Assembly: GCA_965202585.1 (NCBI GenBank)
Contig: OZ241827.1
Location: forward strand, 10,788,001 to 10,852,000
Source of the DNA: Thalia democratica
Lineage: Eukaryota
DNA length: 64,000 nucleotides
Direction of reading: 5' to 3'
Positions 22,981 through 62,598 of the stretch are shown here, in pieces (position 1 is the first letter of the stretch; each line of letters begins with the position of its first letter). The position numbers were made by a program, and so were the translations under genes. The notes beneath the pieces are model-generated. The model was not told where the DNA came from. It made no database searches and saw only the letters and a program-made list of their open reading frames with translations.

Positions 22981-24421
22981 AACTGACAGACAATCTGATG
23001 GATAAAGAGTAATGCTTGAAATAAATGATAATATTTTACAGTAAAACTAAATGTTTTATAATCTTGTTTAGTTGTTTCATGTTTGTGTTTTTCAATTGCA
23101 GTTTTTCGTTTAGCGTCTTTATGTTTGTGTTCGTATTGATTAATAAACTAAGTTGACACAAAATGTCCTCTTTTTAATTTTCAATTGGTTAATTAGCTTA
23201 AAAGTTCATCCTTTTTAGTATTTGAAAGAATGAAAAGTGTGTTTTGCGGCTTATATAAAACTAATGATCAACAAACAGCTACATAACTAGATTAATTCAA
23301 AAAAACTTAAAGATAGTTTCAAGAAGTTTGAAAAATTCATTAAGTAGTGTTTTTAAACCAAACTAAGACCGAAAAATGTGAATCTTTGAACTAAACTTTT
23401 AAATGTATTTGATTTCTTAAAAATTACATAATGCTTCCCTAGACTTTAGTTTTGGTCACTTCATAGAAGCCTTAATCTAATTCAGCTTATTTTAAAAGTA
23501 ACAATTAGTTTACTACCTAACCAAGTTTTGAATTTTTAAAAAATATAAAATATTGTATCACTTCAACATTTAAAAATAGAGTTAAGAAAAAAGAGGCAAA
23601 AAATTAAGAGTAGAAAAAAAGGTGGTAGCAAGTTGATAAATAGCAAAAAAACAAATTTTAAGTTCTTATATGACATTTTTCTTGAATTTGATAAATTTTT
23701 AAGTAAAATTCTGAAAATTAGTTCGAAAATAGATTGTTGATGTTTTTACGAAGAGTTTTAAACTTATGTTTAGACAATTCTTTGTAACAAATAGTTTATA
23801 AATATCATTCTTGAGAAATGTAAGAAGTTCAATAAATGTTTATTTTGTGTTATGAGCTAAAATTAAATTCCGAAATTTGATTTTGTAATTAAATATAGTG
23901 GTAAAATTTATCTTTTGTATAATTTCTTGATTTAGTGACGCATTAAGACTTAAAAGTGTAATAAAAGAGTTCAATGTAAAAACGAGTTTAAACTATTTGT
24001 TTTTTTATTTGAAACTAAATTATTTAAATGATTGAGTTGAAATCGTTTAATACCTACACAATAGTTTATTGCGCTAAAGACAAAAAATACAACAAAAAAG
24101 TGAACAAGAAGTTGGAAAATTGTCTTGAAAACTTTGTGGTTTAATTTTATTATAAATATTAAATGGAAAAATGAAAAAATTACAAAATTTTATAAATGCT
24201 TATTTTAATTAAGTAAAAATATTTTTAATTGGCTGCCATATTTTATTGAGTAAGTCTAATAAGCTAATTACGAATATATCACTAAATAAATTGTTTTTTA
24301 GAATAGAATTCTCTAAGTGTTCGCATTCAATATAACTTGTCGTGTATTTTAAGATTTTTTAAATTTATATGGTTATTTTTCATTTTCATTTTTTTTTAAT
24401 ACTTTTACTTCTGTTTATCAG

Positions 24422-27326
24422 GAGCGATTTCTCCCAATGTTCAGTGTCTTGCGGGGACGGCGTGAAAGCGAGGACGAGGTCCAACACCTGCAATCCGGGG
24501 GAAATCGAATCCCAAACTGTCAAGTGCTCCAGCAGGGTTTGCAGCAAGAACTGCGAAGTCAAGTGGACGGACTGGACAGACTGCAATGATCAGTGTCAAG
24601 GTTTTAAAAATAAAATAATATAAATAAATAAGTTGGTGGTTTTATGAGATATTTGGACTGACTCTAACGATCAGTGTCAAGGTTTGGAAGATAAAATTAT
24701 ATAAATAAATAAGTTGGTGGTTTTATGAGATATTTGGGCTGAATCTAACGACCAGTGTCAAGGTTCGAACAGAAAAAAATGTATAAACAAGTTTTATTGT
24801 TGGTGGTTTTCTAAAATATTTGGATTGACTCTAACGATTAGTGTCAAGGTTTGGAAGATAAAATAAAATGTATCAATAATTTTTAATGTTGGTGACTTTC
24901 TAAACTATTTGGACTGATTGAAATAACTAATATCAACTAAAAAATGATGTAGACATACTAAGTCAAGTTTTATAGCAGTAGAAATATTATTTTACATCAA
25001 CTTTTAACTTTGAAGTATTTCATAGTTTTAATTTTAGTTGCACTGATAATTTTTGTTGTATTAAACTTTTAGTGTTTAGTTTATGAATCAAACAAGCCAA
25101 TTGTATAAAATAAACACTTTTTAGTTTTGAAATTCATCAGATAAATATTACTATACCGATATTTACAGTATCTTTTCAATGTTGTTATACTACTTAACAC
25201 AGCTTTTTACTTTAAATTTAAAATAAAAATTTAACTAAATACGTGTACTTACTAAACCCTGGCACTTGGATGGAAAAAAAATTAGAAAACCTGGATAAAA
25301 TGTGCCTAAAAGCAATGGCAACCCTGCTAACCAAATCTTTTAGAATTAAAAAAAAACTATAAAACCAAATATCTCTTTATAAAATTTAAATATTATAAAT
25401 TCAAGCTTTATATTGCATATATATATGTATATATATATATATATATATATTGTTTTTTCACAGGCGAAAGAGTTAGAAGATAGTAAGTTCTTGTAACGGG
25501 AATGTTATCATGGAGCAAAAACAAGAGTTCTCTGAAATAAGTAAGCAAATATTTTAGTTCTAAAATAGTTATGATACAACCAACTGTGTAAATTTTGTTT
25601 TGTTTTTAAGGTAGAAAAAATTTCTCGATAACTTTAATACTGTTGAATCAGTAAAAACTATCTAAATTAGACACTGACAGAAAATTCTAAAAAAAACAAC
25701 TTCTGTATATCAACATACGAGTGCCAACTATTATATCCTTCTGTACAAACTTATAAATTTCAAACCTTTTTACATAAATATATATATATTTAACTGTTTA
25801 AAATCTAATTTACTAAAAGTTTTACAAAAAACCATTGATATTTTCTAAAAGATAGTTTTGCGTATATGTATTGTTAACTATTAATATTTTTTAATACTTT
25901 TCTTCACAGACACATCTGAATTGACAAATTGGACTCCTTGGTCGAGTTGTTCATCCGTTTGTTACTCAGGAACTCAGAAAAGAAGCAGAAAACAAATTTG
26001 TCCCGCTTTGACTCAAGTGAGAAGCGTTTTTGTATTATTTTTTTTACGTTTATCTGAAGCGAAGTTGTGGTAAAGAGAAAAATATTTAACTCAATATAAG
26101 AAGCATTTTTAGTACGTCTTGGAGTTTTTAAAACAGTTGAAAGCAAAAACTACTTTGTTGATAACGGCAACAAAAAAAACATACCCGTGTTTAATCAATA
26201 AAATACATTTTAAGTATATCGTAAACGTTTAACTATCTGTACAATATATCAGTATATATAACGTTTTTATACCTTTCGAGATACTTTAGAGTTTTGTGTG
26301 AAATTGATCTCAGTTGAAAGATTTTTAGCTAATAATTTTTTTTTTAAAACCCAAAAAATCAAACCGTTTTCGGTTTAAAAATATAAAGTATAACAACAAT
26401 GGGTTTATTTAATTTACTAAACAGGTTTTATTTACAATTTTACAACTCAAGTACAACAATTAACAGCAACAAAAGTAGAAAGTCAACTAATGTGTAAACT
26501 GTCAAAAACAGTACTGTGGAAGCACTTATGTTAAACCTTTTTTCGTAGTTTGAAAAAAACTTTAGTATTGTAGCACTTATAACAAATACTATTTAGTAAA
26601 ACTAAGAACAGTACTATAGAAGCACTTTTAACAAATACTATTTCGTAGCACCAAGAACAGTACTGCGGCAGCGGAGCAGGTTGGGGCGAGTACTCGAAGT
26701 GGTCAGTTTGTTCGGTGAGCTGCGGGCAAGGAGTCAGAAAGAGAACGAGAACACATCCCTGCCGTGAGTAACTACCTTAATATGCTAATATGTGTTTATG
26801 ACGTATGGTATAATGAATTACTTTTATGTAGTAAATAATTTTCAACTGTAAGTGACATTTTATAAAAGCGTAGAAGTTTCTTAAATAATATTTTTTAAAA
26901 ACTCAAAGTTCAGCTCAAAGTGTCATTTGACAAAATTAAAGTTTTTTTATCACACATTAATAAATCAACTTCAACAAAAATTGAAAATTTAACTTCACGC
27001 TCGAATGAACAGCCGATGACGTCATGGGGAGCGGTGCCGAGGATCAAACAGAAATTTGCCGAGGCGAATGCCGAACTTCATCGGACGTTCAGGCGCTCCC
27101 CTCCGTCATCAGCTTCGACCCCAAAAAAGATGACGTCACAATGCATCATCACCATCACGACGGATCGGGACATCACCACGGGGACGAGGCGGGTCACAGC
27201 GGCAGCGAGATGGATCGCCATGACAACGGGGCGTTGGGGGCGGCGGAGAAGGTTTTGGGGTCGAAAGTCGAGGACACGAGCGTGCAGGACGTTTTGAAAA
27301 TAATACAAGCCCAGTTGGTCGGGTGA
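24422..27326 (+). CDS. 3' part of a thrombospondin type-1 repeat protein with His-rich C-terminal tail; exons 24422-24600, 25464-25540 (1-nt frameshift), 25910-26016, 26649-26763, 27013-27326; 5' exons not located
   Basis: TSP1 motifs [75 protein letters not shown]. All exons are AG/GT bounded with compatible phases except the 77-nt exon, which needs 78. The last exon ends [19 protein letters not shown]...QAQLVG*. Confidence 0.85.
24573..24915 (+). repeat. ~81-86 bp tandem repeat (4 full units + 1 partial) built from a TSP1 exon 3' end plus splice donor
   Basis: TGG.(C/T).GA.T..AA.GA..AGTGTCAAG|GTT recurs, with GT at 24601, 24682, 24763 and 24849. Confidence 0.85.
25256..25326 (-). mobile_element. 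Fragment of a repeat/MITE family ending in CAGGGTTGCCA
   Basis: TGGCAACCCTG end and AAAACCTGGA motif; related to the element starting CAGGGTTGTCA at 63108. Confidence 0.45.
25417..25450. repeat. (AT)n microsatellite
   Basis: About 17 AT units with one interruption, directly upstream of a splice acceptor. Confidence 0.9.
26505..26648 (+). repeat. Degenerate tandem echoes of the acceptor and 5' end of the following TSP1 exon (also at ~36738-36870)
   Basis: AACAGTACTGTGGAAGCAC (~26507) and AAGAACAGTACTATAGAAGCAC (~26604) copy the exon start AAGAACAGTACTGCGGCAGC; TTTCGTAG and AACAAATACTATTT also recur. Confidence 0.7.
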
Positions 27327-28044
27327 AAATAAATAAAATATAATCAAGTATTTTTGTTTATTTGTTTTTGTTGTAACGCTTTCGATGTGCCCATTTCAAA
27401 TGCTAACAGTTCTCTAAAAATCTAGCTTTTAAGTCAGATGGTATTAAGTTTAACATTTTCGAATTTCTTTTGTAGTTCATTTGAAAGTATTTGTTTTTAT
27501 AACACTAGACCAATAAATTAATTTTAAACGTTTCTATTTATCGTTTTTTCAAAATTTTCTGTTTTCCTTTACTTTTTTCAATATTCTTTAATTAAGCTAA
27601 AAAGAGAATAAAATGGTTAGACATCTATGTTTAATAACTAAAGTTTTTTTACTAGAGCCAAAAACAAAACTAAAAATGTAGTATCTATTAATTCACTTAA
27701 GCATACACAAATAACACCAATTTTCAGTAAAATTTTTATTTACATGATTAATAGAAATAATGAATAAAATGTAAATGAGTATGCAGTAAATTGAGCTACA
27801 ATTAAATAATCAGTTTCAATAAAATTCTGTAAGTCAATTGTGTCATAAAGGCGTTGTCAAAATGTAGTTTAAATCGTTTCCGAAAAATCAGTTGTAACTA
27901 AATTATTTGAGCTAAGTATTTCTACTATGTTTAGTGAACTAACTGTTAAAAATAAAAACATTTTAACAAGTAACTAATCAAAGTTCAAAATGCAGCAAAT
28001 ACTTTATTACTAAATTCAATTATCAAATGTCAAGTGTGATTGTT

Positions 28045-28307
28045 TTAAACAACTTCGCGCACCATCCATCTCATTGCCTTGAGTGCCATGACGTAATTGC
28101 TGGCGTCGAAATAATCCCAGTGCATAAACTCACCACCTGCATCTCCATCTGCTCCGTAAACCCCATTCATGTTTTGTGAAAGACAGGCGTTGAACCAGTT
28201 GCCTCCATTTCCCCACGAAGTAGCGCAATTTCCATTACTCCACCCGTCGTTGTCCACGTCGTACGAACTGAATTGCATGTTGTTGTGGCCCTCGAGTGCG
28301 TCATATC
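28045..28307 (-). CDS. Isolated but intact terminal exon of a fibrinogen-related domain (C-terminal ligand/Ca-binding part); candidate alternative last exon of the 45630-38259 gene
   Basis: [21 protein letters not shown]...NCATSWGNGGNWFNACLSQNMNGVYG...MRWMVREVV*; acceptor TTTATCAAACAG identical to the paralog and in the same phase; no upstream FReD exons seen between 28.5 and 35.9 kb. Confidence 0.8.
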
Positions 28308-31300
28308 CTGTTTGATAAAGTTTTATTTCTAAAGTTGAACACAAACAAAACTTTTATATAAAAAACTGAGTTATATATAAAACGCATCAAAATCTGTCTT
28401 ATAGCAAGTATTATTGGTTTACTGTTTAACCGTTTTTAATAACTATTGAACATACTATAATAAACTTTAAAAACAGTACTAAGTTGCAGTAGTCCTCCGG
28501 AGGAACTCTTGCTCCCGGACTTTTGCACAAATAACGAAAGCCGTCCTTTAGGCCAGGTCCTTATGCTGGTCGGCACCTAATTAGTTTTTTGTTTGATGTA
28601 CGAGTAAGTGTGCATCTTAGTCAAAACTAAATTTAACTATCACTTAACTAAAAGTTGAATTATTCATTATAACTATACTATAACATATAAATAAGTTAAT
28701 GTAATACACTGCATTGTTAACAATACAAATCATATACTTTTGTAAGTTGTATCTTTTGTGTAGAAGGTTTATACCTTGTTAGATAGAAACAAAGCTAAAT
28801 TTACATTTTCAATTTAAAAATTTAATACTTAGGTCTTAATTTGTATAAATAAAGTTTGTCCATTTTTGAAAATTAGAAACTAACGAAATACAGTTTTTGT
28901 CCACAATTTTTCAAGTAATCTGTTATTTTCAATTATTACGTCATCCGGTAGTCTCAAGTAATTTTTGCTGCATCTTATGTATTGAATTATAAGTTATCAA
29001 GTTTTCTTTTAAATTGCTCTATATTTTTAATTTAAGTAGTGCAAATTTTATATTGATTAATACAGTCATTAATAGCACTAATTATATGTACATAATAAGT
29101 ATTGGATAAGGTGTATCTTAATTAAATTAATATTTATAAATATGTATGGCAATTAACCCTCAAATATTCTATTGCTGCGTAAAACTTAAACTAATTTTAA
29201 AGTTACAATTAACTCTTAATCATTAACTATTAACTTCTTGCGCTGGATTATATGATTATTTCTAGTTTTATGTCTCAAACACTGTATGTATTTATCTATA
29301 CATTTAAAACATTGTCTCTTTTAAGTAATAATTACACTTTAATTATACATCCCATTTAGAGGCTTTATGAGTTTTAAGGTATTTTTAACATCAACCATTG
29401 TATAAAACTTTATTTATCATTAAACGTGTTTAGCAAAATTAATAATGGTAGTTACTAGCTCTGTACTTTTGATATTATAAATCAAATACCGTTACTCCAA
29501 CTAACTCTTATTTTGAGGTTATTATATTTAGTAACTTTCTACTTTTAGCAAATTTTTTTCAATTAAAGTAATTAATTTTTTTTTACTTATTGGTATAGAA
29601 TAGAACAAAATTGTGGGATAAGTTGTCAATTATGTCTTAATCGTTATTAAACATACCTTATTCTAACAATATTGAAAATAGATGAAATTTTGTAATTTAG
29701 TTGGTAGTTCATTATTTTGTTCGTATTGTTGTAAAGTTAATTAAAAGTTTATTTAATAAATATTCTCTCTCGTATATTAATAGCGTTTTTTATATTTCTA
29801 GAACGTTATTACATTTCAATTTTGTTGCTTCGTAACTTAGTTCTATTTCTAACTAAATACAGTCAATTATTACTATTTTGTTATCAGTCGTCATGTTGCT
29901 CTGGTTTGTATGATCATTTCTTTATGTCTTAAACAATACTTATTTAACCTTTTAGTAATGATTACACTTAAATTATAGTTGTTATTTAAAAGCTTTAAGA
30001 GTTATTCAGTCCAGTTTCAAGGTCTACATCAAATCTATTAAGTTGTTCAACCGTTATACATGACTTGCTTAATACTGATTTCGTATCTTTATCTAAAAAT
30101 AAATAGTTTTTAAAAGACAGCTAGCTTAAATTAAGTTTTGTTTTTTAATTTTAATAAATTCTCAATCCAGAAGCCATTTTAGTTTTGAGGTTTAGTTTTG
30201 TTACCTTTTACAGTAGTTTTGTAGTGCCATTTAGTAATTAAATATATTTTCAGTTTCTAGTGATTCCTTGCTTTGCTTAAATTAGACTTTTATTAAAAAT
30301 AACTATCAATATCCTAATTATTATTTTATTGCGCTGTTTTATATGATTATTTCCAATGTTATGTCTTAAAAAAGTTGTGTTTAACTTTAAATTTTCAAGA
30401 TTAAACTGTCCACAAAAGCGCGTATCTAGGAAATTTCGATCTTTAACTACCTACAACTCAACCTAATACAAACATGTTTATTATGTTTGTATATTTAATA
30501 AAATAATGTTTAAACAGTACTCTTTCTTCATTAAATTAATACATGTTTCTGTGAAATGATAAAAGAAAGTAAAAAAGTAGTACTGGTTGAATTGGTTTTT
30601 TATTATATTTTCCATGGAACTTGTTTCGCTAGGCTCTTTATTAGTGAACTTAAAACTTTTAATAGTTTATACATTTTCAAACGTTATACACCAGGTCGTG
30701 TTTAGTTCTTTTTAGTGCCTTTTAAGTCTATAAGGTTGTGTATATTATACATAATAGTATTATTTACTGGCAATAAGAAGAAAATTTCCTTAGTTTTGCA
30801 CGTTTTAAAGCGCGTCTACTAAGTTTAAACTTTTTTTAGTACCTTTTTTTTCTTGGTTGGCCTTAATACAGTTCTGTTTTTGAAATCTATTTGAAAAGAA
30901 AGGTTATAAAACTGTAATGAGGACTTATGTAGCCTTATTTTCTTTACTTTTAATTTGTTTATGGGTCAATTCAAGTTTTATTAACCAAAATACCAGTTAA
31001 AATTAAAGCAAAGTTCACTTATTTTTAAACTCTGCAACATGCTTGTCAACCTACTTAACTCACAAATTAATTACTTAAGCGTGAAATATTATGTTTGAAA
31101 CAAACAAACGTTATTTCTACATCTTTTGCTTGTATTTCTATTTCAGTATCATAAGTATGTTTTTAGGGTCCTTGGCTGAGTTTTAATGCGGATTTTAAAG
31201 GTCTTTTAGATTATTTTATACTTATTGTTATCTAGAACTTGATTTTAGCTCTTCAGTCTTATTTGTTTAAAGTTAATTCTTTTTTACTCTCTTATTTAGT

Positions 31301-31745
31301 TCTTTATCTAAGCAACAAGATATTAGAGTTACAGCTTTCCACTATACTAATGAAATTAAAATACGCCTTCAATAGCAATACTTAATTAGTAGTTATTTGT
31401 TTGCACTGTTTTCCACCTTAATGAAACAAATTGATTTGCAGTAAAAAATTCAAAAGCTTTTAAAGAGTTAAATAATGTTTTATTGAAATCTATTTAGTTA
31501 TATGAGCTTGCTAATTATTACGCCATCAGTTTGATTTGGACTAAAAAAATTTTACTTATACGTAAGGCCGTAGAAGTAAATTTACAGTATATTTTTTACA
31601 CAATATTGTTAATAACAGATTTAAATTACAAGTAAAGTTTTATGTTTTATAGTATGAATCCTGGCTGTCGTACTACAAATAATACAGTTTTGTTGTAGAC
31701 AGTCTGGTATTATTCTATAATAAACACTTCAACTTACTTTGTAAT

Positions 31746-33701
31746 TCCATCGGCTTCAAAAAGTACCACGTCGACCACCACAGGTTTGTGTTTAGTTTTA
31801 CTTGCTAGACTTTGAAACATGTATTTATTTGAACTTGTTCACACATCATAAGTTGAACTTTTCTTTCAAAATGTTTTACTAACCAAAAGTTTTTCAAATT
31901 TGTTTAACATACACCACTTGATAATGAAACTCGTATAGTTTTAAAAACGTTTGTGAAATGAAATATAAAACAAAAATGTAATTTTTATACACTTAGTTGC
32001 AAATGGTATATTATCTTACGTTATTTTTTATTTACATATTTTGTTTTTCTGTTTGAATTAGAGTTAAGACACCTACAAGGCGAATCGTTGTTTAATAAAA
32101 GAGTTCTTTGAAACCTTTAATTTTTGTTTTTATACAGCGCAAAGTTGGTATTTTATTCGATAATTTGTTTATTTTCAAAATAATTTTTTGTACTCACATG
32201 CGTAAGTTAGGTGTTTTTAAAATACTTTTTTTTATTATAGACCACTGCAGGGTTTTGTGTTAGAGGCTGATAGTATTCAGCAATGAAAGTTATTATTTTT
32301 GTTATTGGTATTTCCATGTATTCAAACTTGATTTATAGTATTTTTATTCAGTCTTCGACTTTTTTAATAGTTTTCTCGTCCTTAAAGTTAATACTTAGGT
32401 CTAAATTTGCATAAATAAATTTTGGCCATCTTTGAAAATTAGACACTAACGAAAGACAGTTTTTGTCCACAATTTTTCAAGTTATTTATTATTTTCACTT
32501 ACTTTCAATTATTACGTCATAATGTAGTCTCGTACAGTTTAAAATTAGTAATTTTGCTGCATTTTTATTTCAAAGTTATTCGAAAAGTTCAAGTGATAAA
32601 AAAATTAAAGTGTATTTTGTTTTTGCGAGTTTTTTTATCATTAAAAGTCAGAAAAAACGCATTAATCATTGGTAAATGGCCACGGATTTACGATAACAAA
32701 AGAGTACATGTGTTTTTATAAACCTTTAAAAATTTGCTGTTTTTAAAAGGTTTGGATTAGTGCATTGCAATAAAACTCACTAACTAGATTAAACTTACTT
32801 TCTTTTTCTTTTTTTTAATCACGTGCACACACTTAAACTTTCATTTTTTAAAAATAATTTTGTTAAGACGTTCACTGTGGAGAGTTTAAATTCTAGTGCA
32901 AACACATTACATCATTCTTAAATTTAAGTTAAATGTCACTAAATAAACTTGACACTAGTAAACAGTAATTCGTAAAGTTATAGCGTGTATTTACTTTAAA
33001 TAGGTATGAATGCTGTTTTTTCTAATGGTTATATAACTTTACACTTTTTGTATCCTAACAAACGATTTTACCAAACCAAAGCGCATTTATTATGAGAAAA
33101 CACAGTACTGTTAAAAACTTGTTGTCCTGTTCACTTTAATATGGTTTTTGTATCTTTTTGCATACAGTTTTTACTAAACTTTTTAAAACCCATCGTACCT
33201 TAAAAAATAAAAATAAATGTGATTGAAACTTTTTTCAATTTGAACTGTTGTACTAAATTACAATAATAGACAGTTTCAGGGTTTTCGGTATGTTTTGAAC
33301 AGCTGCATTTTAGATATTTTTCAAATATATTATTTGCGATTAATTTTGTTATTCAATATTTCTAGTATGTGTTTATTTGTAAGCAAGTTACCATAAAAAT
33401 GAAAAGATTCATAGAAAACTAGATGGCAAAAAGTTAAAGTTCATTAAAAAAATTTAATAAAAAATAACAATGCCATGGTGGAAGCCTGTATGGTAGCAAA
33501 CTGAAACTACTCAAAACATTTAAACTCAAATACCATTCAACGCAGGTACCTGGGCGGGGACAAGTTGGACGTGGACCTGCCAACGGAGCTGGAAGGTTAC
33601 CTGTTCAGCAACTCGTTCACCAAAATATTATGGCTCTTCCTCAACCCGCTCTTCTACACGTTGCGACCCATGGCCGTCAACCCCAAGCCCGTCACTGGTT
33701 G
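31746..33701 (+). pseudogene. DEGS1: Captured fragment of a sphingolipid delta-4 desaturase (DEGS/DES1-like) gene: 5'-truncated exon 31746-31783 and complete exon 33546-~33701, with the intron retained
   Basis: The spliced frame reads SIGFKKYHVDHHR|YLGGDKLDVDLPTELEGYLFSNSFTKILWLFLNPLFYTLRPMAVNPKPVTGW, which aligns with the DEGS second His-box region (SISFKRYHMDHHRYLG...DVDIPTDFEG...QPLFYAFRP...NPKP, recalled from memory). GT at 31784, AG at 33544-33545. The other exons were not found in the window. Confidence 0.85.
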
Positions 33702-34342
33702 GTGATTGGTTGACTGTAGTTTTGGTTTGTTACGAGTTTTCTCAGCTTTGGTTATTTTTCTGCGCATTGAAAACTGCAAGTTCAAAAGAATAAAGTTTAT
33801 TTTTTGTATTGTGTTACTTATTTATAAAAAAGTTCTTGGGAAAAATGTATTTATAAAATATTTATATAAAGGAAAATAATTAAGATTATTGCTTAGTTTA
33901 TAATATGTGTATTCGGAATTTGTTAAAAATTTTACAAATTGTTTGTTTTCCTTGTAACGTCTTCAGCTTTTGATTTACATCAATAGCAATAAAGTTTGTT
34001 TAATTTTGTCTTTATACATAACTTTTTGGTACACCTTCAAATTAACTCCATTGTGCTTATTCCAATAAAATATTTTGAGTTCGAGTTTAATTGATAGTTG
34101 CCAAACTTTATATTCAATTTTTGGCATAAGCACTATAAATAGTGAACAATTTGATAATATAATAAACTAATTAAGTTATACGCACTTAAGCATTGTTTTG
34201 TAACTGAAGATGTTCTGTATAAATAAACATTGTACAATAGCTATAATTAAAAACATAAAACGTTTAAAACTTTTCAGAAATGTTTATAATGATTAGTTTA
34301 TATTGATAAGTATATTTTTATCAAAAATATGTGCTTAAAGTT

Positions 34343-34695
34343 TATTTTGTTATACTTAATAATGGAGTATCTTATAATTTCTTAAACTTGAGGTCTAAAT
34401 TAAACTTTATATTTTTAATGATTAGTATGTTTTTATTTAATGAATCTCGTTTGTAATTTAATTTAAATTTCAAGTATATTTTGTTATACTTGATAATGGA
34501 GTATCTTATAATTTCTTAAGCTTGAGGTCTAAATTAAACTTTATATTTTTAATGATTAGTATGTTTTTATTTAATGAATCTCGTTTGTAATTTAATTTAA
34601 ATTTCAAGTATATTTTGTGATGCTTTATAATGGAGCATCTTATAATTTCTTTAACTTGAGGTCTAAATAAAACTTTATATTTATAATGAATAGTA
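34343..34695. repeat. 134-bp tandem repeat, about 2.6 copies
   Basis: TATTTTGT(T/G)AT.CTT..TAATGGAG.ATCTTATAATTTC starts at 34343, 34477 and 34611. Confidence 0.9.
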
Positions 34696-35877
34696 TATAT
34701 TAGTATAGTATTTATAACATTTTTAAGTATAAGAAAAAAAAAACAGATTATTGCTTAGTTTGTAATATGTGTATTCCGAATATGCAAAAAGTTTTCTTGT
34801 AACGTCTTAAGCTTTTTATTTACATCAATAACGTATAGGGTTTTGTATTATTTAAAACAACAATTCGGTCAAAGAAAATGAGTACGTATTTATATGAAAG
34901 CGTTGAAAATCCTCATAAATAATTGATAGTTTGTAAGTTGAGGCAGAACAACTTAGAATAAAGAATTTTGACTTTGTGGACCGATATTGTAATGTATTGA
35001 AATTTCTTTAAACCTGGAAAAAAATTACATTTGTGTAACCGAGATTAAGCATTTATAAAGAATCAGCTTGGACTGTAAACAATGTTAATAACCGAAGAAT
35101 TCTCCTATAAAACTGAATGGTAAACGTGATATGTTTTAATTACCGAGATTAATTAAACAAAACAAAAGACCTAAAATCGATTCAACTGTCTTTTTCATAC
35201 CAATCAGAAATTATATTAAATTGAATGAATTCTTGAAGTTTGCTATTTATTTACTCAAGCCCAATTATACACCTATTTTTATATGTTTTATCGATCACAG
35301 ACTTTTAAGTATACCTCAAAACTATTCTATCAATACATTCTGAACAAAATCAGTTATTCAAATATACATTAATTTTTTTTAAATCATATAATCATATGAT
35401 CTAACAAACGCATAACAATACAGTTAAAAGCAATGATTATTTAAAAGTTGAATAATCTTTAAACAAATTAAAAATAACATTTTTTACTATTATTGTTTTA
35501 ATGCCACTCCCACGTTACTTGCAAATTAACTTACAAATACAAAATTTATAGTTATATAAAAACTTGACATATAAATAGAGTCTAAAAGTAATATATAGTT
35601 AGCTTAATTAACTTTGTTATCTACAGTATTACCTTAAATATATGTTTTTTACAGTTTAAAAACCAAAGTAGTTTCTAAACAACAGTAATATTTTAATAAC
35701 TTTAAAGACATGTAAAATTTTTCAAAGAAAATAAAACAGCTTGTAGATTTAGTTTTCATTTAAATATATATTACTTATTGAAAAATAATAAAAAACTACA
35801 TTAATCAGAATTGTAGGAATTTGAATTAATGTGAACTTCATTTAATTAGTGAATGTAAGAAAGAACTCGATAGATAA

Positions 35878-38697
35878 AACTTCTGTATATCAACATACGA
35901 ATGCCAACTACTATATCCTTCTGTACAAACTTATAAATTTCAAACCTTTTTACATACATATGTTTAAATATTAAACTGTTTAAAATCTAATTTACTATTT
36001 TACAAAATTGATTTTACAAAAAAAAAACCATTAATATTTTTTATGGATAGTTTTGCGTAAATGCATTGTGAATTTTTAAAATTTTTATTGTTTTTCTTCA
36101 CAGACACATCTGAATTGACAAATTGGACTCCTTGGTCGAGTTGATCATCCGTTTGTTACTCAGGAAATCAGAAAAGAAACAGAAAACAAATTTGTCCCGC
36201 CCTGACACAAGTGAGAAGAGTTTTAATTTGTTAATTATCCTGCTTAATAATAATTTGTTTTACGCTTAACTGAAGCGAAGTTTTGGTAAGTAGAACTAAA
36301 CGTTTAACTTATTATAAGAAAAATTTTGAGTAAGTCTTGTAGTTTTAAAAGCTAATGGTTTAAAAACTTACTTTGTTTATCTTATTACCTGCATAACGGC
36401 AACATAAAATAACATACCCGTGTTTAATCAATAAAATATACTTTAAGAATATCGTAAACGTTTGACTATCTGTTCAATATATTAGTATAAGTAAAAAGTT
36501 TTTATCGCCTTTTAAGTTCTTTTGAGTTTCTGTGTAATATTGATAACATTTGAAAGTTTTTGTAGCTAATAATTTGTTAAACAAATCCATAACAAAACTT
36601 TTTTGGTTTCAACATGTAATGTAAACAACAATGTTTTCATTTAACTGACTAAACAGGTTTTACTTACAATTTTCAACCCAAGTACAACAATTAACAGCAA
36701 CAAAAGTAGAAAGTCAACTAATGTGTAAACTGTCAAAAACAGTACTGTGGAAGCATTTATGATAAACCTTTTTCCGTAGTTTAAAAAAAACTTTAGTGTT
36801 GTAGCACTTATAACAAATACTATTTAGTAACTGTAGTGTTGTAATACTTATAACAAACAATTTTTTGTAGCACCAAGAACAGTACTGCGGAAGCGGAGCA
36901 GGTTGGGGCGAGTACTTGAACTAGTCAGTTTGTTCAGTGAGCTGCGGGCAAGGAGTCAGAAAGAGAACGAGAACACATCCCTGCCGTGAGTAACTACCTT
37001 AAGATGCTAATATGTGTTTATGACGTATGATGTAATGAATTACTTTTATGGAATAAATAGTTTTTAATTGTAAGATAACATTTTATAAAAGCGTAGAAGT
37101 TTCAATTTAATTTTTTTAAATAATATTTTCGAAAAACTCAAAGTTCAGCTCAAAGTGTCATTTGACAAAATCAAAGTTTTCGTATCACACATTAATAAAT
37201 CAACTTAAACAAAAATTAAAAATTTAATTTCACGCTCGAATGAACAGCCGATGACGTCATTGGGAGCGGTGCCGAGGATCAAACAGAAGTTTGCCGAGTC
37301 GAATGCCGAACTTCATCGGACGTTCAGGCGCTCCCCTCCGTCATCAGCTTCGACTCCAAAGAAGATGACGTCACAATGCATCATCACCGTCACGACGGAT
37401 CGGGACATCACCATGGAGACGAACTGGGTCACAGCGGCAGCGAGATGGATCGCCATGACAACGGGGGGTTGGGGGCGGCGGAGAAGGTTTTGGGGTCGAA
37501 AGTCGAGGACACGAGCGTGCAGGACGTTTTGAAAATAATACAAGCCAAGTTGGTCGGGTGAAAACAAATAAAATATAATCAAGTATTTTTGTTTATTAAA
37601 TTTCGTAGAAATGCATTTTTTTGCTCATTTCAAATGCTAACAGTTCTCTAAAAACCTAGCTTTTATGTCAGATGGTATTAACTTTAACCATTTTGAATTT
37701 CTTTTGTAGTTCATTTAAAATGTTTTGTTTTTACAACACTAGACCAATAAATTACTTTTAAAAGCTTCTATTTATTGTTGTTTCAAAATTTTCTGTTTTC
37801 TTTTACTTTTTTCAATGTCTTTAATTACGCAAAATAGAGAATAAAAAGGTTGGACATCTATGTTTAATAACTAAAGTTTTTTTATTAGAGCCAAAAAACA
37901 AAACTAAAAATTTAGAATCTATTCATTCACTTAAGTATACACAAATGACACCAATTTTCAGTAAAATTTTTATTTACATGATTAAGAGTAATAATGAATA
38001 AAATGTAAATGAATATGCAGTAAATCGAGCTACAATTAAAGAATCAGTTTCAACAAAATTCTGTAAGTCAATTGTGTCATAAAAGCGTTGTCAATTGTAG
38101 TTTAAATCGTTTCCGAAAAATCAGTTGTAACTAAATTATTTGAGCTAAGTTTTTCTACTATGTTTAGTGAACTAACTGTTGAAAATAAAAATATTTTAAC
38201 AAGTAACTAATCAAAGTACAAAATGCAGCAAATACTTTAACTATCAAGTGTGATTGTTTTAAACAACTTCACGCAGCATCCATCTCATTGTCTTGAGTGC
38301 CATGAAAGCATTGTTGGTGTCGAAATTCCTCCAAAGCATATACTCAGCACCTGCGTCTCCATCTGCTCCGTACTTTCCATTCATATTTTGGTTGTAACAG
38401 GCTCGATACCAGTTGCCTCCATTTCCCCAGTTAGTAGCGCAATTTCCCCCGATCTTGTCGTTGTCCACGTCGAATGTAGAGAATTGCATGTTGTTGTGGC
38501 CCTCGAGTGCGTCATATCCTGTTTGATAAAGTTTTATTTCTAAAGTTGAACACAAACAAAACTTTTTATATAAAAAACTGAGTTATATATAAAACGCATC
38601 AAAATCTGTCTTATAGCAAATATTATTGGTTTACTGTTTATCCGTTTTTAAGAACTAATGAACACACTGTAATAAACTTTAAAAACAGTACTAAGTT
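35878..38697. repeat. 2.8-kb segmental duplication, copy 2
   Basis: Direct repeat of 25698-28485. Confidence 0.95.
36104..37561 (+). pseudogene. 5'-truncated TSP1/His-tail duplicate (exons 36104-36210, 36871-36985, 37248-37561) with two premature stops
   Basis: TGT(Cys)>TGA at 36142-36144 and TGG(Trp)>TAG at 36922-36924; otherwise near-identical to 25910-27326. Confidence 0.9.
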
Positions 38698-41600
38698 AGT
38701 TTATAACGTTGTACTAGTGATAAAAATGAGCATTCAAACAAATATGAAGAAAATTATTTATCTTTGACGATTTAGTTTAAATATTTTTATATTTAACTTA
38801 AAACTTTTTTTTTCGACTTATTTAACATAAATAATAAAAACTTTGAATCTATTTTTCAATTAATGGGTGTGATTGGTAGAACACTGCCCTTAAAAACAAC
38901 AATAAAAATGTAAATAATGGTAGACGATCATTTCTAACTAGCGATCATTTAAAACTTCATCATTTTAAAAGATCAATGTTAAAAATAATTGGTTGTATTT
39001 AACTCCATAATATCAAGCTCAATCTTATCAAACTCCATCATAATAAACGTAACTTATATAACTTGTAACTTGATCGTACTTAGTAACTTGTACATGTTAT
39101 TTTATTATCAGTATAAAAGTTGGATTACTTATTTATAGTTTTCTTGTATTGTTAAAAGAAACGAAAGTGTACATAGGCATTATAAAAACAATGAATTGCT
39201 ATCAAATCAAATGAGCCGTTAAGTAAGCATATTATTACCTACTCGAACATTTTTAATTTAAATTAATGTCTAAAAGTTTTTTTTCTTTCGTTAGTTCTTT
39301 TATTGTACCAGTTTTTTGATAACGCAAAGACAAAAGTACTGTTCTAACATAATAGCTAGCTATATTACGTTTATTTAAAGAAAAATAGTAATAAATACAA
39401 TAAAACGTAAGTTGTAAAAATCAAAGTAAACTAAGCAGTAAATATATTTGAATATATTTATTAATAATAAACTTTAAGTCAATGTAAACTTAAAATAAAA
39501 AAGGAGGAGATAAAGAATAGAATTTATGTGAGAACAGACTATAGCTTGTTACAATAACAAATTTATAAATACTTTAGAATTACTAAAAACAATTCAAATT
39601 TAATTTTCTTCAATCTGTATTATGGATATAAGAACTACATATAAAATAAAATAATGTTTTAGCAGAGACGAATATAAGTTTTCTCGATTGAATATCATAA
39701 ATTCTTTCTTATAAAGAACTAAATAACTTTCAATAAAATACCTAATAAAATGGTTAAATCGATACTGTAAAGTAATAAGGCCTCTTCTTAAAATAAAAAC
39801 AAAAAAATAAATAAACATCTGATTAGTTATTAACTTTTGTTCTAGTGAGATAGATATTAATGATTTGTTTAACATATATATCAATATTTGGTATTTACTA
39901 AACAATTGCTATAGAGTAAATTAAAATGAGAAGGTCAGTTGTAAATAAGCTATAACTTTTAAAATATCATGTTAAGAAGCGTGCATGAAATAAAACAACT
40001 TTCAAAATATATTAAGTAAAAAAATATTTTATGTTAACTTTAACATTCAAAACTTTGAAAGTTAGCAAACTAGAAGAAGCTAAACTGTTAATATATGGAC
40101 AAATCTAAAAATAAATTAAAACAAATTAAAAATTCATTATCACAACGAGTTTGAAATGATGAAATTTAATATTTTCGAATTTGATATGACCAAAAGTAAA
40201 ATAATCGCGAATTAAAAAGGTAGTAAGCCGTAAAAAAAAATTTTAACAATGATTGATAAAATAAAAATGTTATAAGAAATACTAACCTACGTTACCAGAG
40301 AACGAGTTCTTTTCAAAAGTAAGTCTGTAGTTGTCTGTACCATCAGCTACTTTGAAGTTTCTAAATAAATATTCATATACAAAAAGTTCATTAAATATTT
40401 GTTTTAAAAGTGATATCTAAATAAAAAACTAGGATTCATATAAAGTTATCAAAAAAACTCTTTCAAAGAATTCTTAAGAACTAGAAGTTGACTATGAACA
40501 AAGTTATATTAAATTATCTAGCTTTATTAGTTAAACTAAAAGTATTCTTTCTTTTAAGAAAAATGGCAAACACTACTTGAGTATAATACAAACCATATTG
40601 CTGTTTCAAAGATGCTATTTAGTTCCGCATATAAAGTTAGTTTTTAAAAACTGTGTTCGTTTTAAAAAACAAATGTCTTAATGAAAGTTGTTAAATATAA
40701 AGTATATTATCCAAGACATTGCATTGAACGTTATCCGAATGTATGTTTGAAAATATTAAAATTTACCGTCAGTAAGATGGTTGTGAACAAACAGTTTATT
40801 ATATAATTTGTTAAATTATAAGGTTTTAAACGCAACAAAACAATAGGAAAAAAAATATTCAAGTGTTTTATGCATTGACTTTAAATAAAAAAAATATATT
40901 GTATGTGGTGAGGATTTTTTCAAACAGACTAACCTATATTCAGCATATTTTTTTTCACCTTTGTAGCTTTCCATCTCTATTCTGACTTGATAGTTTCTTC
41001 CATCGCTGGTTATATTGCTGATTGTTTTCAAACCTGTTACATATAGTTTGACATTAGTGAAAAGCGTTACTTGTAACTTTTTATCATCATAATACTGTTC
41101 AACTTCATTATTTATTAGTTTTTACAATCAATTGTAGTATAACATTAAGAGTAATCCTCGCAATGTTTATATATTAAATTTTTGTTTTACTTTCATACTT
41201 AACATATTGCTATTCATACTTTCTTACCAAGCCAGAATTCTCCATTTATATCTCCGAAGAAGTTTTCGTAAGTCGTCCAACTCCTATTAAATTCGACAGA
41301 TCCGTCATATCTGTTGTGAAAAACCTGCAAACAAAAAATCTAGTTATTTAACAACTTAAGTCTGGTATAAATTACTTAATAATGTTAGAAGATACACTTG
41401 TATTTAAATTTGCTGTAAAAACGTCGAACCTGTTTTGTTTCATCTTAAAAATCAAGTTTTAAATAAACAAGAAAACCATAAACAATTAGAAAAGATGTTC
41501 AAAAGAATTGTTTATACAACTTATTTCATGCTTATGTAAATTGTGATTTTATATAATGTACATTTTATCAAACCTACTATGCATCACCTTCAAAATTAAA

Positions 41601-44600
41601 TGTTTGTTGTTTATATTACATACTAATAAAAACTGTAATTTTATTTCTGTACTGTTAAATTAAATATTATATGTGCAATAAACTATTCAAAGGTATATTT
41701 TAATGCTTAATATATCACTTTTAAAGTAAACACAAGGAAAAATCTGACTAAACTATTTAATTAAAAGTAGTGTGATTTTTTTAGTTACAAATATCTTAAT
41801 ATAATTGTCAGTTTATAATAAGTTTTCATAAAAAATTAAAAATATCTATTAGCTCTATGTAAGTTAAAATTTTGTAGGTTTTAGATGTAACACAAAGCTT
41901 ATTTTACCAATTTTACTTGTTTTCTTTTTGTACAACTTTGCTGTTTAATAGAATATAAACAAGTAAAATTGGTAAATAAGCTTTGTATATATATATATAT
42001 ATTTGTTTATCTTGAAATTACTTCTAATTATTGTGTAAGAAAATTATTCAAAACATCTGACTGTAATTGTTTAGGTACTTAAACTTAAAAAAACCTAATT
42101 TTTTAAGTCATTACTCCTATACTTAGATATTTTTATAAAATTTAATAAACTTATTAATGAAATACTAACAATCCATCCTCCGTCAGCTGACCTCATTTCA
42201 CAAAACAGGTTGACGTGTTTCTCACCAACTAGAAATTCGTAAACTCCTGATTTTCTACTCATACCCGGTATTTGTAACGATTGACAATCTGTAAAATAAC
42301 TTGTATATAGTTTTTTAGTTGAATTTTGCTATACTGAAAATATAACTATGAAAAAAAACTTCTATTTCTCTATTGAACTATCGTTAATTTATATTTGCAT
42401 ATATTGTTTAATTATCACTTAAAGAAAAACATTGCATATATTTACATATGTTTTTCAAGTATATATTTCATTGTAAAATTGACAATTTGTTACAATAGTT
42501 ACATGTATTAATAAAACGTGGCTTGGTTATATTTTAATTATCAAGTTGTAAAATAAAGTTTTTGAGTTTTGGAATATTTTTAAAGTTTAAAAATAATATT
42601 TAATGTTCAATAATCAACAAATAAAGAAATTTATATAATAAATGAATATAATTTATAAATAAAAGCTATTGTAAGCATTCACAAACACTATTCAGTTTAC
42701 ATCTAATTGAAAAGTAAAAGCTGTTCTTTTCAGTCATTAGATTTTTTTTACATTATTTGAAAAGTTAACTTAAAGTTGAAAAAACTGAACAAATTATTTA
42801 GAAACCTTAAATAACTGAATTGCAGCAGTGCATATTTTTATTTATTTTTATTATTTATATTTTCTCTAAGTTTCCTTTCCGAAAAACAATTAATTATTTT
42901 ATTAGTTTTACTAAAACTTTTTGCCTTAACACTTAAAGTAATAATTGATTTTTACTATATACGGTATCATTTTTACCAAATTTCTTATGCACGTATATTT
43001 TTATTGACATTATGCTTGTTTCATATAATAACTTTTTATATATTTACATATATTTATATAAAATTCTTTATAAATATTCAGACTTATAATACGACGTAAG
43101 CAAAATTTTCTATAAAGATAGATGTGTTTACTTAAAATGGCTAAAAAGCATACCATTAATATTAGAGCAGTTTTTTAAGTTCATTAAAATACGAAAACAT
43201 CAGATTAATTATAATTATAATCAAATTGAACAGAAATAAAAGTTTAAACAATATACATTGGTACGACGAATAACAATAAGTAAAAATTCGAATGTGGCTG
43301 AGGTGATATTCAGATAAGCTCTTAAGATTATTTGTGTTATAATAGGTTTTTTAATCATTAAGTTAATAATAACTCATAAAGTTTTCGAATGAGATAAATT
43401 AAAAGCTTTACATTTTAATTACATATAAATTTCACAATGTTTATATATGATTACAACAATTTTTAATTGTTGATAATTTAAAATTAAACACTGTTTGTTA
43501 TTCTTATAAAATAAAAAAGTTTAACAATTCGAAATTGAAACACAAAATAAGTTTCATAACTTTATGAAGTTTAATTACTAACAAGTAAATATTTCACTTA
43601 ATAACACGTTTACTTTTACCTGTAGAAGGATAAAAAGTCATTACTTTTGGTTTTGTAAATTTTACGTTTAAATGTTTATTTGTTATTATCTTTTTTAACA
43701 TGTCTTCTGTTAAAAAAAGATTATTATATATACTCGGGTGCAATTTTAACATAAATATTAAAAGTAAAATAACTGATAAAAAAAATTACTGATAATATAC
43801 TATAAAAGTGTTTATTAACTGTTGGAACCTTTATTTACTGTTATGACTTTATTCACTTTAAAATTTACAATTGTAACTTTGTAAACTAAAAACTATACAT
43901 ATAACTATATGTTATATTAGTTTTTATGAAATTGTTTTTATTTACTTTTATTATTTAAATTTTAGTTTAAAGTTACAATAAGTTGTATTTTTTATCCAAC
44001 AAAACTATATACAAAAGTATAAATATATTTCGTATGAACGTTTATGAGCTAAACTGCATTTATTGTTATTACATAAGCTTATTTTTTAAGTAAAATAAGT
44101 TATAATTCTTTATTCAAACAACTTAGCACTAACATTTCTTGTCTGGTACACATTTCGGAGCGATGAGTTTCCACATACCACTGCCAAATCCATCATCTAT
44201 ACAGTAATTGATGGTTAAGCAAGCATCATCTATTTCGAAACCTAATAAAAGTAATTGATTGTTAAAAATGTACAATATTTGTTTTCAAAAAATGTTTTCA
44301 TATTATTTTCAACAAATTGTAACGCCCTTTTTCTAAAAAACAACAATAAAAGTTTAGAGTTTGCTTTTTTCTAACGCAAACTGTCATTAGGGTGTACAAA
44401 CACTTTATGGTTTTCAATTTAAAACACATACTATTTATTTTAAAAACACACTTACTGGTTATATTTAGGTAAAAGTTCGGTAGAAAGTTTCAAAATATTT
44501 GGTTTGTAACGATTTTGTTACCAAGTTATGAAGTATTTCATTACATAATAATTTCAATAAAAAATGTTTACTTACCCTTATTGCAAGAATAAGTACATTC

Positions 44601-45630
44601 GCTACCCACTTTATTATCAAGAGTGCATTCTATATTGCCATTAGAAATTCCTTTTAATCGCGGACAGTCGGTTACTGTTATTAATTTATTATATTAGCTT
44701 TAATAAGCGTTGCTTTATGATTAAACATTGATTTGGTGAAGAAGTTTTGATCTTTAGGCATTGCATGAAAGTTAAGGAAATTAAACATATATCTATTCAA
44801 GTTCATAATTACTGATTATTATCAGGAGCGAATAAACTTTAATTGTTAATAGTTTATGAAAATTTAACTTTTCGTCTTAATTAAAATAGAAGTATCAAAA
44901 ATAAACGTTTTCAGGATTCAAAGTATGTACTGAGTATTTTTTATTTGCTTTTATATTATAGCTATAAGAATTATTAAAATCGGAATTTGTAAAGCTTATC
45001 ATTTAATGCATATATTCAGTATTATTTTTTTAACGCTAACTCTAAAGCAAGGTTAGTACAAGTTTGAAACGTTGAGAGTAAATACCCATGAATTACTTCT
45101 TAAAATGATATACTTTTTGTCTCCTAGTTATAGTTATATTATAATTTATTAATTAACAAAATACTTTTAGCATATAATTCAAACTTAAGCACTACTCTAA
45201 AGACTATCAAATATAAAAATAATGCTGTAAAATTATAATCTTTTAATTAATTAATTGTTCAAAATTTCTTTTTTATCTAAATGCTAAAAGAAAAAATAAA
45301 GAATATGAATTTATAAGTACTTGCTGTGTATAATGTGTTCAAAAACATAAGTCTTCAGTTAAAATGTAATAGCTAAGTCTTAGTTTAGTTTCTTTTCAAT
45401 TAACTAATAAAAAATCTTGATGGTGATTATTTGTAGGAAAACGAACCTATAAAATAAATTTCATTAGAAAAGTATAGAATCAGAAAACGATAATTTTACT
45501 ATTCTTGTAATTATTTAAAAAGAAATTTAATAAACAAATAAACCATTTAAAATATTTCTCTTAGCTTACCTTGTACATTTTCAGCTCTAATTTTTAAGAA
45601 CATGAATGCGAAGATGAGTAGAAATTTCAT
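38259..45630 (-). CDS. Complete secreted sushi (CCP) + fibrinogen-related domain protein, 305 aa; exons 45630-45570, 44674-44576, 44241-44134, 42288-42170, 41324-41228, 41033-40934, 40360-40287, 38518-38259
   Basis: Exon lengths 61+99+108+119+97+100+74+260 = 918 nt with matching phases and GT-AG borders. Signal peptide [16 protein letters not shown]; sushi [14 protein letters not shown]...[10 protein letters not shown]...[10 protein letters not shown]; FReD motifs [31 protein letters not shown]...[32 protein letters not shown]. Confidence 0.92.
41892..41986. repeat. Intronic inverted repeat (~30-bp arms, ~35-nt spacer)
   Basis: ACAAAGCTTATTTTACCAATTTTACTTGTTT ... AAACAAGTAAAATTGGTAAATAAGCTTTGT; the arms differ by one T. 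Confidence 0.8.
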
Positions 45631-62221: not shown

Positions 62222-62598
62222 TCGGACACGATTTAACTTGCATTTTGACAACGCCTTTAACACAATTGACTTACAGAATTTTGTTGAAACTGATTCTTTA
62301 ATTGTAGCTCAATTTACTGCATATTCATTTACATTTTATTCATTATTACTATTAATCGGGTAAATAAAAATTTTACTGAAAATTGGTGTCATTTGTGTAT
62401 GCTTAAGTGAATGAATAGATACCACATTTTTAATTTTGTTTTTGGCTCTAATCTAAAAACTTTAGTTATTAAACATAGATCTTTAGCCTTTTTATTCTCT
62501 ATTATCGTAATTAAAGAACAATAAAAAAAGAAAAAGAAAACAGAAAATTTTGAAAAAACAATAAATAGAAGCGTTAAAAAATAATGTTTGGTCTAGTG
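62222..62598 (-). repeat. Third, inverted copy of the distal FReD 3'-UTR / inter-gene segment
   Basis: Reverse complement of ~37737-38112 and ~27505-27882 (e.g. TTTTACTGAAAATTGGTGTCATTTGTGTATGCTTAAGTGAATGAATAG). Confidence 0.85.

Follow-up and report, generated by a model that had tools for sequence, protein, structure and literature searches.

The 64-kb window analysed here (64,000 nt of the Thalia democratica contig OZ241827.1; the whole stretch is very AT-rich, with a GC content of 24.7%) contains a gene on the minus strand that encodes a protein with a sushi domain and a fibrinogen-related domain (FReD). It was found that the last exon of this sushi-FReD gene, hereafter the main copy, is accompanied on the same strand by a second, orphan copy (Table 1). 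The core of the orphan exon has kept its reading frame, and its changes relative to the main copy are confined to positions that are variable throughout the family of related exons; these two features are what is special to it. As for its status, we favour, at about an even chance and judging from the DNA, an unused spare copy that is either young or refreshed by gene conversion. We infer both its disuse and the way in which it came to differ.

All junctions of the sushi-FReD gene are of the AG/GT type, its own introns are 194–1845 nt long, and the metatranscriptome relatives P0018 and P0162 are colinear with the eight-exon model. Pfam matches to Sushi and Fibrinogen_C were found in the gene model. 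Together with the signal peptide, they bear out a preliminary description of this DNA, in which the product was taken for a secreted sushi-FReD protein; the position of the exon 7 donor given there was also reproduced. The Fibrinogen_C profile (PF00147, curated cut-off 22 bits) matched the main exon with 47 bits and the orphan exon with 38 bits, both at positions 143–216, and the start of the domain was matched by an upstream exon of the gene. The main copy is presumably the last exon in use, given its position nearest exon 7. Note that the donor sequence GTTAGT, an unusual preference, occurs at four of the seven donors of this gene (44133, 42169, 40933 and 40286), the other three being GTAAG.

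The two terminal exons are interchangeable as far as splicing signals and reading frame are concerned. The 20 nt upstream of the acceptor are identical in both copies, exon 7 ends with the first base of a codon that either terminal exon completes with its own first two bases, and both terminal exons end with TAA. Placing the orphan after exon 7 keeps the frame and gives a product of 306 aa versus 305 aa. In addition, AATAAA or ATTAAA is located 37 nt past the orphan exon and 285 nt past the main one, which is weak evidence in DNA with 25% GC. The structure required of an alternative last exon is therefore present, namely a compatible acceptor and phase behind one donor, with a stop codon and a poly(A) hexamer for each exon. 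A further copy of exons 1–7 that would belong to the orphan was not found anywhere in the window. The exons differ by 49 substitutions and one in-frame 3-nt indel, leading to 22 amino acid changes and one inserted residue; eight codons are altered at all three positions, and there are only four simple synonymous changes, plus a TCT/AGT exchange of serine codons. The orphan contains no stop, frameshift or other disabling change, and its splice site is kept. Thus, the second copy with an identical acceptor, the same phase and no upstream exons, its compatibility with exon 7 and every count given in the preliminary description were reproduced.

Each copy lies in a duplicated block of about 2.8 kb that also carries, on the opposite strand, the last three exons of a convergent gene with TSP1 repeats. 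These TSP1 exons are intact in the lower block, beside the orphan. In the upper block, beside the main FReD exon, they contain two stops and 13 replacements in 176 codons, with a synonymous divergence of 0.075; both stops, which had already been noted, were confirmed. Since the TSP1 exons are intact below and broken above, the duplication copied the meeting point of the convergent genes, and each gene appears to use the copy on its own side. The events behind the orphan, as we reconstruct them, would be as follows. A 2.8-kb segmental duplication copied the junction of the FReD and TSP1 genes, and the 7.4-kb interval that separates the copies would later have been occupied by repeats. Each gene would use the copy beside its own upstream exons, so that the far TSP1 copies decay and the far FReD exon is most likely unused. 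The orphan may look healthy since it is young, only the exon in use having moved on; alternatively, it may be continually rewritten by gene conversion with functional members of the family.

A real alternative last exon is a less probable explanation of the orphan. Exon 7 (donor 40287) would then be joined either to 38518 or, bypassing the proximal exon and its poly(A) site, to 28307. The identical acceptor and phase, together with the open frames of both products, argue for this, and distal last exons are common in animals. Against it stands the geometry of the locus: use of the orphan needs a repeat-filled intron of 11,979 nt, about six times the largest intron of the gene, and also the skipping of a complete terminal exon with AATAAA and of its nearer acceptor, for which the final 100 intron nucleotides are the same as for the orphan; this nearer acceptor should win. 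Splicing to the orphan is possible on these grounds, but it is not the default expectation. Moreover, a young relic or conversion from a paralog explains every sequence feature as well.

The divergence between the blocks was found to be very uneven. The intron adjacent to the exon differs by six substitutions and one indel in 178 nt (3.4%), the 3′ flank by 7.9% and one TSP1 intron by 16.7%; outside the exon, the blocks differ at 9.2% of positions (228/2486) and by 23 indel events. In the preliminary description, the same intron count was taken as a neutral level of ~4%; the count stands, but this level does not, given the block-wide values. The exon core (25.7%) is about 3–5 times above the neutral level, and it is strongly but not uniquely diverged: a non-coding stretch of ~180 nt (26416–26241) contains 46 mismatches, the same number as the core. 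The core has a single, in-frame indel, while ~2.4 mostly frame-breaking indels would be expected. An alternative last exon could also descend from an old duplication, with flanks homogenised later and selection keeping the cores different. The synonymous divergence in the framework codons of the exon (0.21) and intron patches of 16.7%, exceeding the 3.4–4.5% of the adjacent flank, fit such patchy homogenisation.

A tract of 138 nt around the acceptor is free of substitutions between the copies, its sole difference being a 1-nt change in the length of a homopolymer. At the local divergence of 4.5%, about six differences would be expected in it, and the block-wide 9.2% would predict about 13; its intron stretch is ~18% diverged among related cassettes (that is, terminal exons with their flanks). 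This points to a recent conversion between the copies that ended where the variable core starts.

In order to place the two exons within a family, relatives were collected through searches with either exon in Tara Oceans and other marine metagenomes, which also yielded a few transcript-derived proteins. More than 30 distinct related terminal-exon open reading frames (ORFs) were found in marine metagenomes and metatranscriptomes. The nearest known exon to either copy was 76% identical (three word-index protein searches and a representative search), and neither a donor nor an ortholog exon was found in the JGI metagenomes using a protein profile and a 30-nt conserved DNA pattern. The check for a near-identical donor paralog proposed in the preliminary description, run on sequence databases, thus revealed none above 76% identity. 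The family framework consists of the motifs MQFS.-DVDND, NCA, GNGGNW, C, QN.NG.YG and FM.W and a tail ending with MRWM.REVV, and between these motifs are positions that accept almost any residue. DVDND and both cysteines of the P domain, which were aligned to residues 196–219 of tachylectin-5A, are present in both copies and invariant across the family. The differences between the main and orphan copies fall into family-hypervariable columns at 22 of 23 positions (hypergeometric P = 2e-7), and the mean entropy of the columns amounts to 2.31 bits where the copies differ versus 0.72 bits where they agree (Mann–Whitney P = 3e-9). This distribution, with no conserved position violated, counts in favour of a used alternative last exon.

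The framework codons of the two copies showed a nonsynonymous divergence (dN) of 0.016 and a synonymous divergence (dS) of 0.21, and the hypervariable codons a dN of 0.65 and a dS of 0.53, which is saturated. The low framework dN relative to dS also argues for use of the orphan. At the local drift, ~2–4 framework changes are expected versus 0–2 seen, a difference that is not significant (P ~0.2). A similar spread was found throughout the family: for the ten cassettes with available DNA, pairwise differences amount to 19–37 of 85 residues, be the flanks 4% diverged or unalignable. The main and orphan copies differ at 22 residues, yet only 5 of 53 same-residue codons are changed; between L005 and L009, 4 of 48 framework codons carry synonymous changes, though their introns are unalignable. 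Such low synonymous divergence across paralogs is suggestive of exchange, or of constraint acting on the DNA itself. In about 25–30 codons that line the Ca loop and pocket, turnover is so rapid that every pair of members appears saturated, whereas the framework codons are near-identical even at synonymous sites. Since the same spread is seen among all family pairs, the difference between the main and orphan copies is one instance of a family-wide pattern and calls for no special event; as it matches a fast-changing family, it does not prove a specificity switch.

Near-identity of the framework codons at synonymous sites was observed in both copies (38259–38518 and 28045–28307) and in the cassettes L001, L002, L005, L007–L010 and L012, with introns 15–50% diverged. 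The pocket codons interleaved with them are replaced wholesale, for which DNA-level constraint, conversion anchors or a targeted process may be considered. Among 12 metagenome contigs (up to 2.4 kb), none carried two terminal exons, and an attempt to extend L001 via its intronic ORF matched only L001 itself. In predicted proteins of unrelated animals, namely P0025 (ficolin-2-like, Limanda limanda), P0012 (Macrostomum lignano) and P0026, 2–4 tandem copies of the C-terminal part of the FReD or of an internal FReD exon were noted. Judging from these sequences, tandem duplication of FReD exons may recur in other animals, either as real arrays or as mis-joined predictions.

The drift of the orphan was estimated at ~2.6% per lineage (locally, with L001 as the outgroup). 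At this level, the probability of no stop would be ~0.5–0.7 and that of no frameshift ~0.35–0.45, giving an open frame by chance in ~20–30% of cases. The preliminary description had the orphan under coding selection; this was not borne out, because such a chance is considerable at a divergence of a few percent and conversion fits equally well. Several results nevertheless weigh against an unused spare copy. If all 49 differences were due to drift, the frame would stay open in only ~1% of cases (0.083 for no stop × 0.12 for no frameshift); such a low chance indicates that the changes arose under coding constraint somewhere, not necessarily in the orphan. All 37 family-conserved positions are intact in both copies, save for one conservative Thr/Ser exchange in the orphan, which has acquired neither a stop nor a frameshift, while the TSP1 copies of the same duplication decayed; the latter is also an argument for an alternative last exon. 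The acceptor region is perfectly preserved as well. With respect to conversion, no donor was found in the searches described above, and the PHI test, made on only seven family exons, having low power and being blind to very short tracts, gave no signal of recombination (P = 0.54). A runs test on sites polarised with L001 was not significant; the polarising is unreliable, since the variable codons of L001 are saturated too.

In tachylectin-5A (TL5A) and the ficolins, which are FReD lectins, the P subdomain contains a Ca site and a pocket for acetyl groups. The exons were aligned to TL5A (1jc9) through P0163. The contact residues of TL5A are Tyr210, His220, Tyr236/Ala237 and Tyr248 (PMC11741071). 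The variable columns of the family map to the loop past the Ca-binding aspartates, to Thr209, just before Tyr210, to both sides of Cys219 including His220, to residues at or beside Tyr236/Ala237 and to the loop holding Tyr248. It is thus supported by the alignment that the differences between the main and orphan copies lie in the part of the FReD that comprises the Ca loop and the pocket, as the preliminary description had proposed for the Ca- and ligand-binding P subdomain, with the framework intact in both. Their location at or beside His220, Tyr236/Ala237, Tyr248 and the Ca loop is a further point for an alternative last exon. Both copies have Trp where TL5A has Tyr210; the position of His220 is occupied by Tyr in the main exon and by Leu in the orphan, Tyr236/Ala237 correspond to Gly and Ala/Gly, and Tyr248 lies in the variable loop T/A-N/S-N-A/Y. 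Neither copy has the four aromatic residues of the TL5A pocket, an aromatic counterpart being present for Tyr210 only. Since the aromatic contacts are mostly unmatched or located in variable loops, binding of acetylated sugars is not implied.

The terminal cassettes behind exon 7 were found to differ between close relatives. In L004, L005 and L006, from a related organism, the orthologous end of exon 7 is followed by an intron that is 85% identical down to window position 39274; beyond the equivalent of this position, there are 244 unrelated bases and then a different terminal exon (P0009; L005:1-1034). L001 (its positions 44-1040), a contig of the sample that also gave L004, is homologous to the window from ~39263 onward, including the main exon with its flank, and its own terminal exon is P0001. 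The two homologies to intron 7 meet within ~10 bases (39263–39274), which suggests that close relatives have exchanged, gained or lost cassettes behind exon 7. The joining of an orthologous exon 7 to a different cassette in L005, and thus the exchange or addition of cassettes, also argues for an alternative last exon. Paralog cassettes with homologous flanks (L001, L007, L009 and L010) are potential conversion donors. Such cassettes occur at the ends of other genes, as in L009, where the downstream neighbour is a kelch-like ORF and not TSP1.

The arrangement could also be an artefact in which haplotypes or collapsed paralogs were wrongly set in tandem, as the similarity of the blocks and the repeats at their boundary might suggest, but this is scarcely credible. 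Three sequencing runs were examined (X1, X2 and X3; type unrecorded), the contigs of which cover introns and the spacer as DNA would; they were all that searches for RNA runs with the orphan and main exons yielded, and they showed no splice joints. A Logan contig of X1 (28378–28536) spans the junction of block 1 and the spacer (28485/28486) without any difference. The orphan core forms a separate contig of 163 nt (28126–28288), also without a difference, with a word depth of 40 in X1 and 50 in X2, single-copy neighbours having 41. A contig of X3, which has a second organism label, carries the left junction of block 2, and the loose end at 25698 is the reverse complement of 35850–35877. In addition, the unique neighbours differ for each block, block 1 adjoining the upstream TSP1 exons and block 2 intron 7 of the FReD gene. 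The junction contigs, the single-copy depth of the orphan core and the distinct flanks argue against mis-assembled haplotypes, which the preliminary description had listed as an option.

It was also considered that the orphan might belong to another transcription unit, either through a promoter or first exon in the spacer that escaped recognition or with a leader trans-spliced onto its acceptor. In favour of this are the intact acceptor and the lack of substitutions between the copies in the final 100 nt of the intron. Such a unit is very improbable, since no signal peptide, sushi, FReD or other recognisable exon was found in the spacer (28486–35877) and no Rfam or tRNA feature was detected. 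Moreover, the exon alone encodes only the 86 C-terminal residues of a domain of 220 and would neither fold nor be secreted.

A comparison with known systems indicated both similarities and differences. The sushi-FReD protein shares with TL5A and the ficolins the Fibrinogen_C match, the D-x-D-x-D Ca loop, the equivalents of Cys206 and Cys219 and their spacing. Unlike ficolins in the strict sense, it has no collagen stalk or Gly-X-Y exon, the order being a signal peptide, one sushi domain and then the FReD. Invertebrate FREPs (Biomphalaria, bivalves, mosquitoes) likewise form a large, unusually diverse family of secreted FReD proteins that is thought to widen recognition. However, the diversity found here is germline diversity between paralogs or loci, packed into ~25–30 codons of the last exon within a near-identical framework; the sushi-FReD gene has no IgSF domains, and nothing points to somatic change.

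Alternative 3′ terminal exons, each with a different binding module, occur in Drosophila lola and mod(mdg4). If the orphan were used, its gene would resemble these and the fibrinogen alpha-E chain (Fib420; PDB match 1fzd), in which an extra last exon adds a FReD, in combining a shared scaffold with a choice of C-terminus, whereas here two exons 10 kb apart with identical acceptors would swap part of a domain and not the whole. The variable first exons of UGT1 and the protocadherins have their own promoters and documented use. Such clusters share with the present locus tandem duplicated exons that diverge at ligand-contact positions, with constant exons in common, but they involve first exons, while the candidate here is a last exon. 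No report of a last-exon pocket switch in fibrinogen-type lectins was found through a full-text literature search; segmental duplication is a known phenomenon, and so are FReD lectin families of hypervariable sequence.

If the orphan were used, one gene would give two recognition proteins that are alike except for the binding pocket, which would offer an animal lacking antibodies a simple way to diversify recognition. Such a two-way specificity switch, which would represent a germline terminal-cassette system for recognition diversity behind a constant exon 7 in a marine invertebrate, can be put forward tentatively from the sequence. Even if the orphan is unused, its pocket codons are saturated while neighbouring synonymous and flanking sites have changed by only a few percent, and the decayed TSP1 exons of the same duplication provide a matched internal control. 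The locus is therefore well suited to the question of whether the hypervariability of FReD lectins stems from selection or from gene conversion.

Table 1. Features of the sushi-FReD locus and its surroundings (positions in the window).
Feature	Position	Strand	Remarks
sushi-FReD gene	38259–45630	minus	8 exons, 305-aa product; hand model checked by translation and splice sites
Exon 1, signal peptide	45630–45570	minus	hydrophobic N-terminus of the sushi-FReD product
Exons 2 and 3, one sushi split across both	44674–44576, 44241–44134	minus	sushi-FReD gene
Exons 4, 5 and 6	42288–42170, 41324–41228, 41033–40934	minus	sushi-FReD gene
Exon 7	40360–40287	minus	sushi-FReD gene; donor 40287/GT
Exon 8 (last exon), main copy	38518–38259	minus	C-terminal part of FReD
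Orphan second copy of last FReD exon	28307–28045	minus	open frame; acceptor and phase as in main copy
Hypervariable core of orphan exon	28090–28271	minus	46/179 aligned bases differ from main copy 38304–38482 (25.7%)
Substitution-free tract, 138 nt	28270–28407 (main 38481–38619)	minus	last 100 nt of intron and first 38 nt of exon
Duplicated block 1	25698–28485	both	orphan FReD exon (minus) and intact last three TSP1 exons (plus); self-BLAST, MAFFT
Duplicated block 2	35878–38697	both	main FReD last exon and decayed TSP1 exon copies; self-BLAST
Decayed TSP1 copies, block 2	36104–36210; 36871–36985; 37250–37564		TGA 36142–36144; TAG 36922–36924; third copy still open
Convergent TSP1-repeat gene, 3′ part	24363–27329	plus	exon region 24363–24620; exons 25910–26016, 26649–26763
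Last exon of TSP1 gene, His-rich	~27013–27329	plus	stop 27327–27329
Inter-block spacer, 7.4 kb	28486–35877		repeats only
Very high-copy element in spacer	28486–28633		word depth ~6e4 vs ~40 single-copy
Tandem 134-nt units, three, in spacer	34335–34736		second and third 97% and 74% identical to first

The spacer also contains dispersed short repeats. High-copy repeats were noted at 25088–25284, 28437–28633 and 29028–29224, with Logan word depths of ~1e5, 6e4 and 8e3, respectively, versus ~40 for single-copy DNA, and the second of them abuts the right end of block 1. Searches of the repeat-rich block boundaries against Rfam (from position 24000) and with ARAGORN for tRNA genes gave no match. An element of ~380 nt is located in the 3′ flank of both FReD copies (37737–38116 and 27500–27880) and also flanks the cassettes L001, L004, L007, L009 and L010. 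Its third, inverted copy (62222–62598, plus strand, 90% identical) lies near the end of the window with no FReD exon beside it. No Pfam match was obtained for the His-rich last exon of the TSP1 gene. This exon is GC-rich and open on both strands, and it is also open in the decayed copy.

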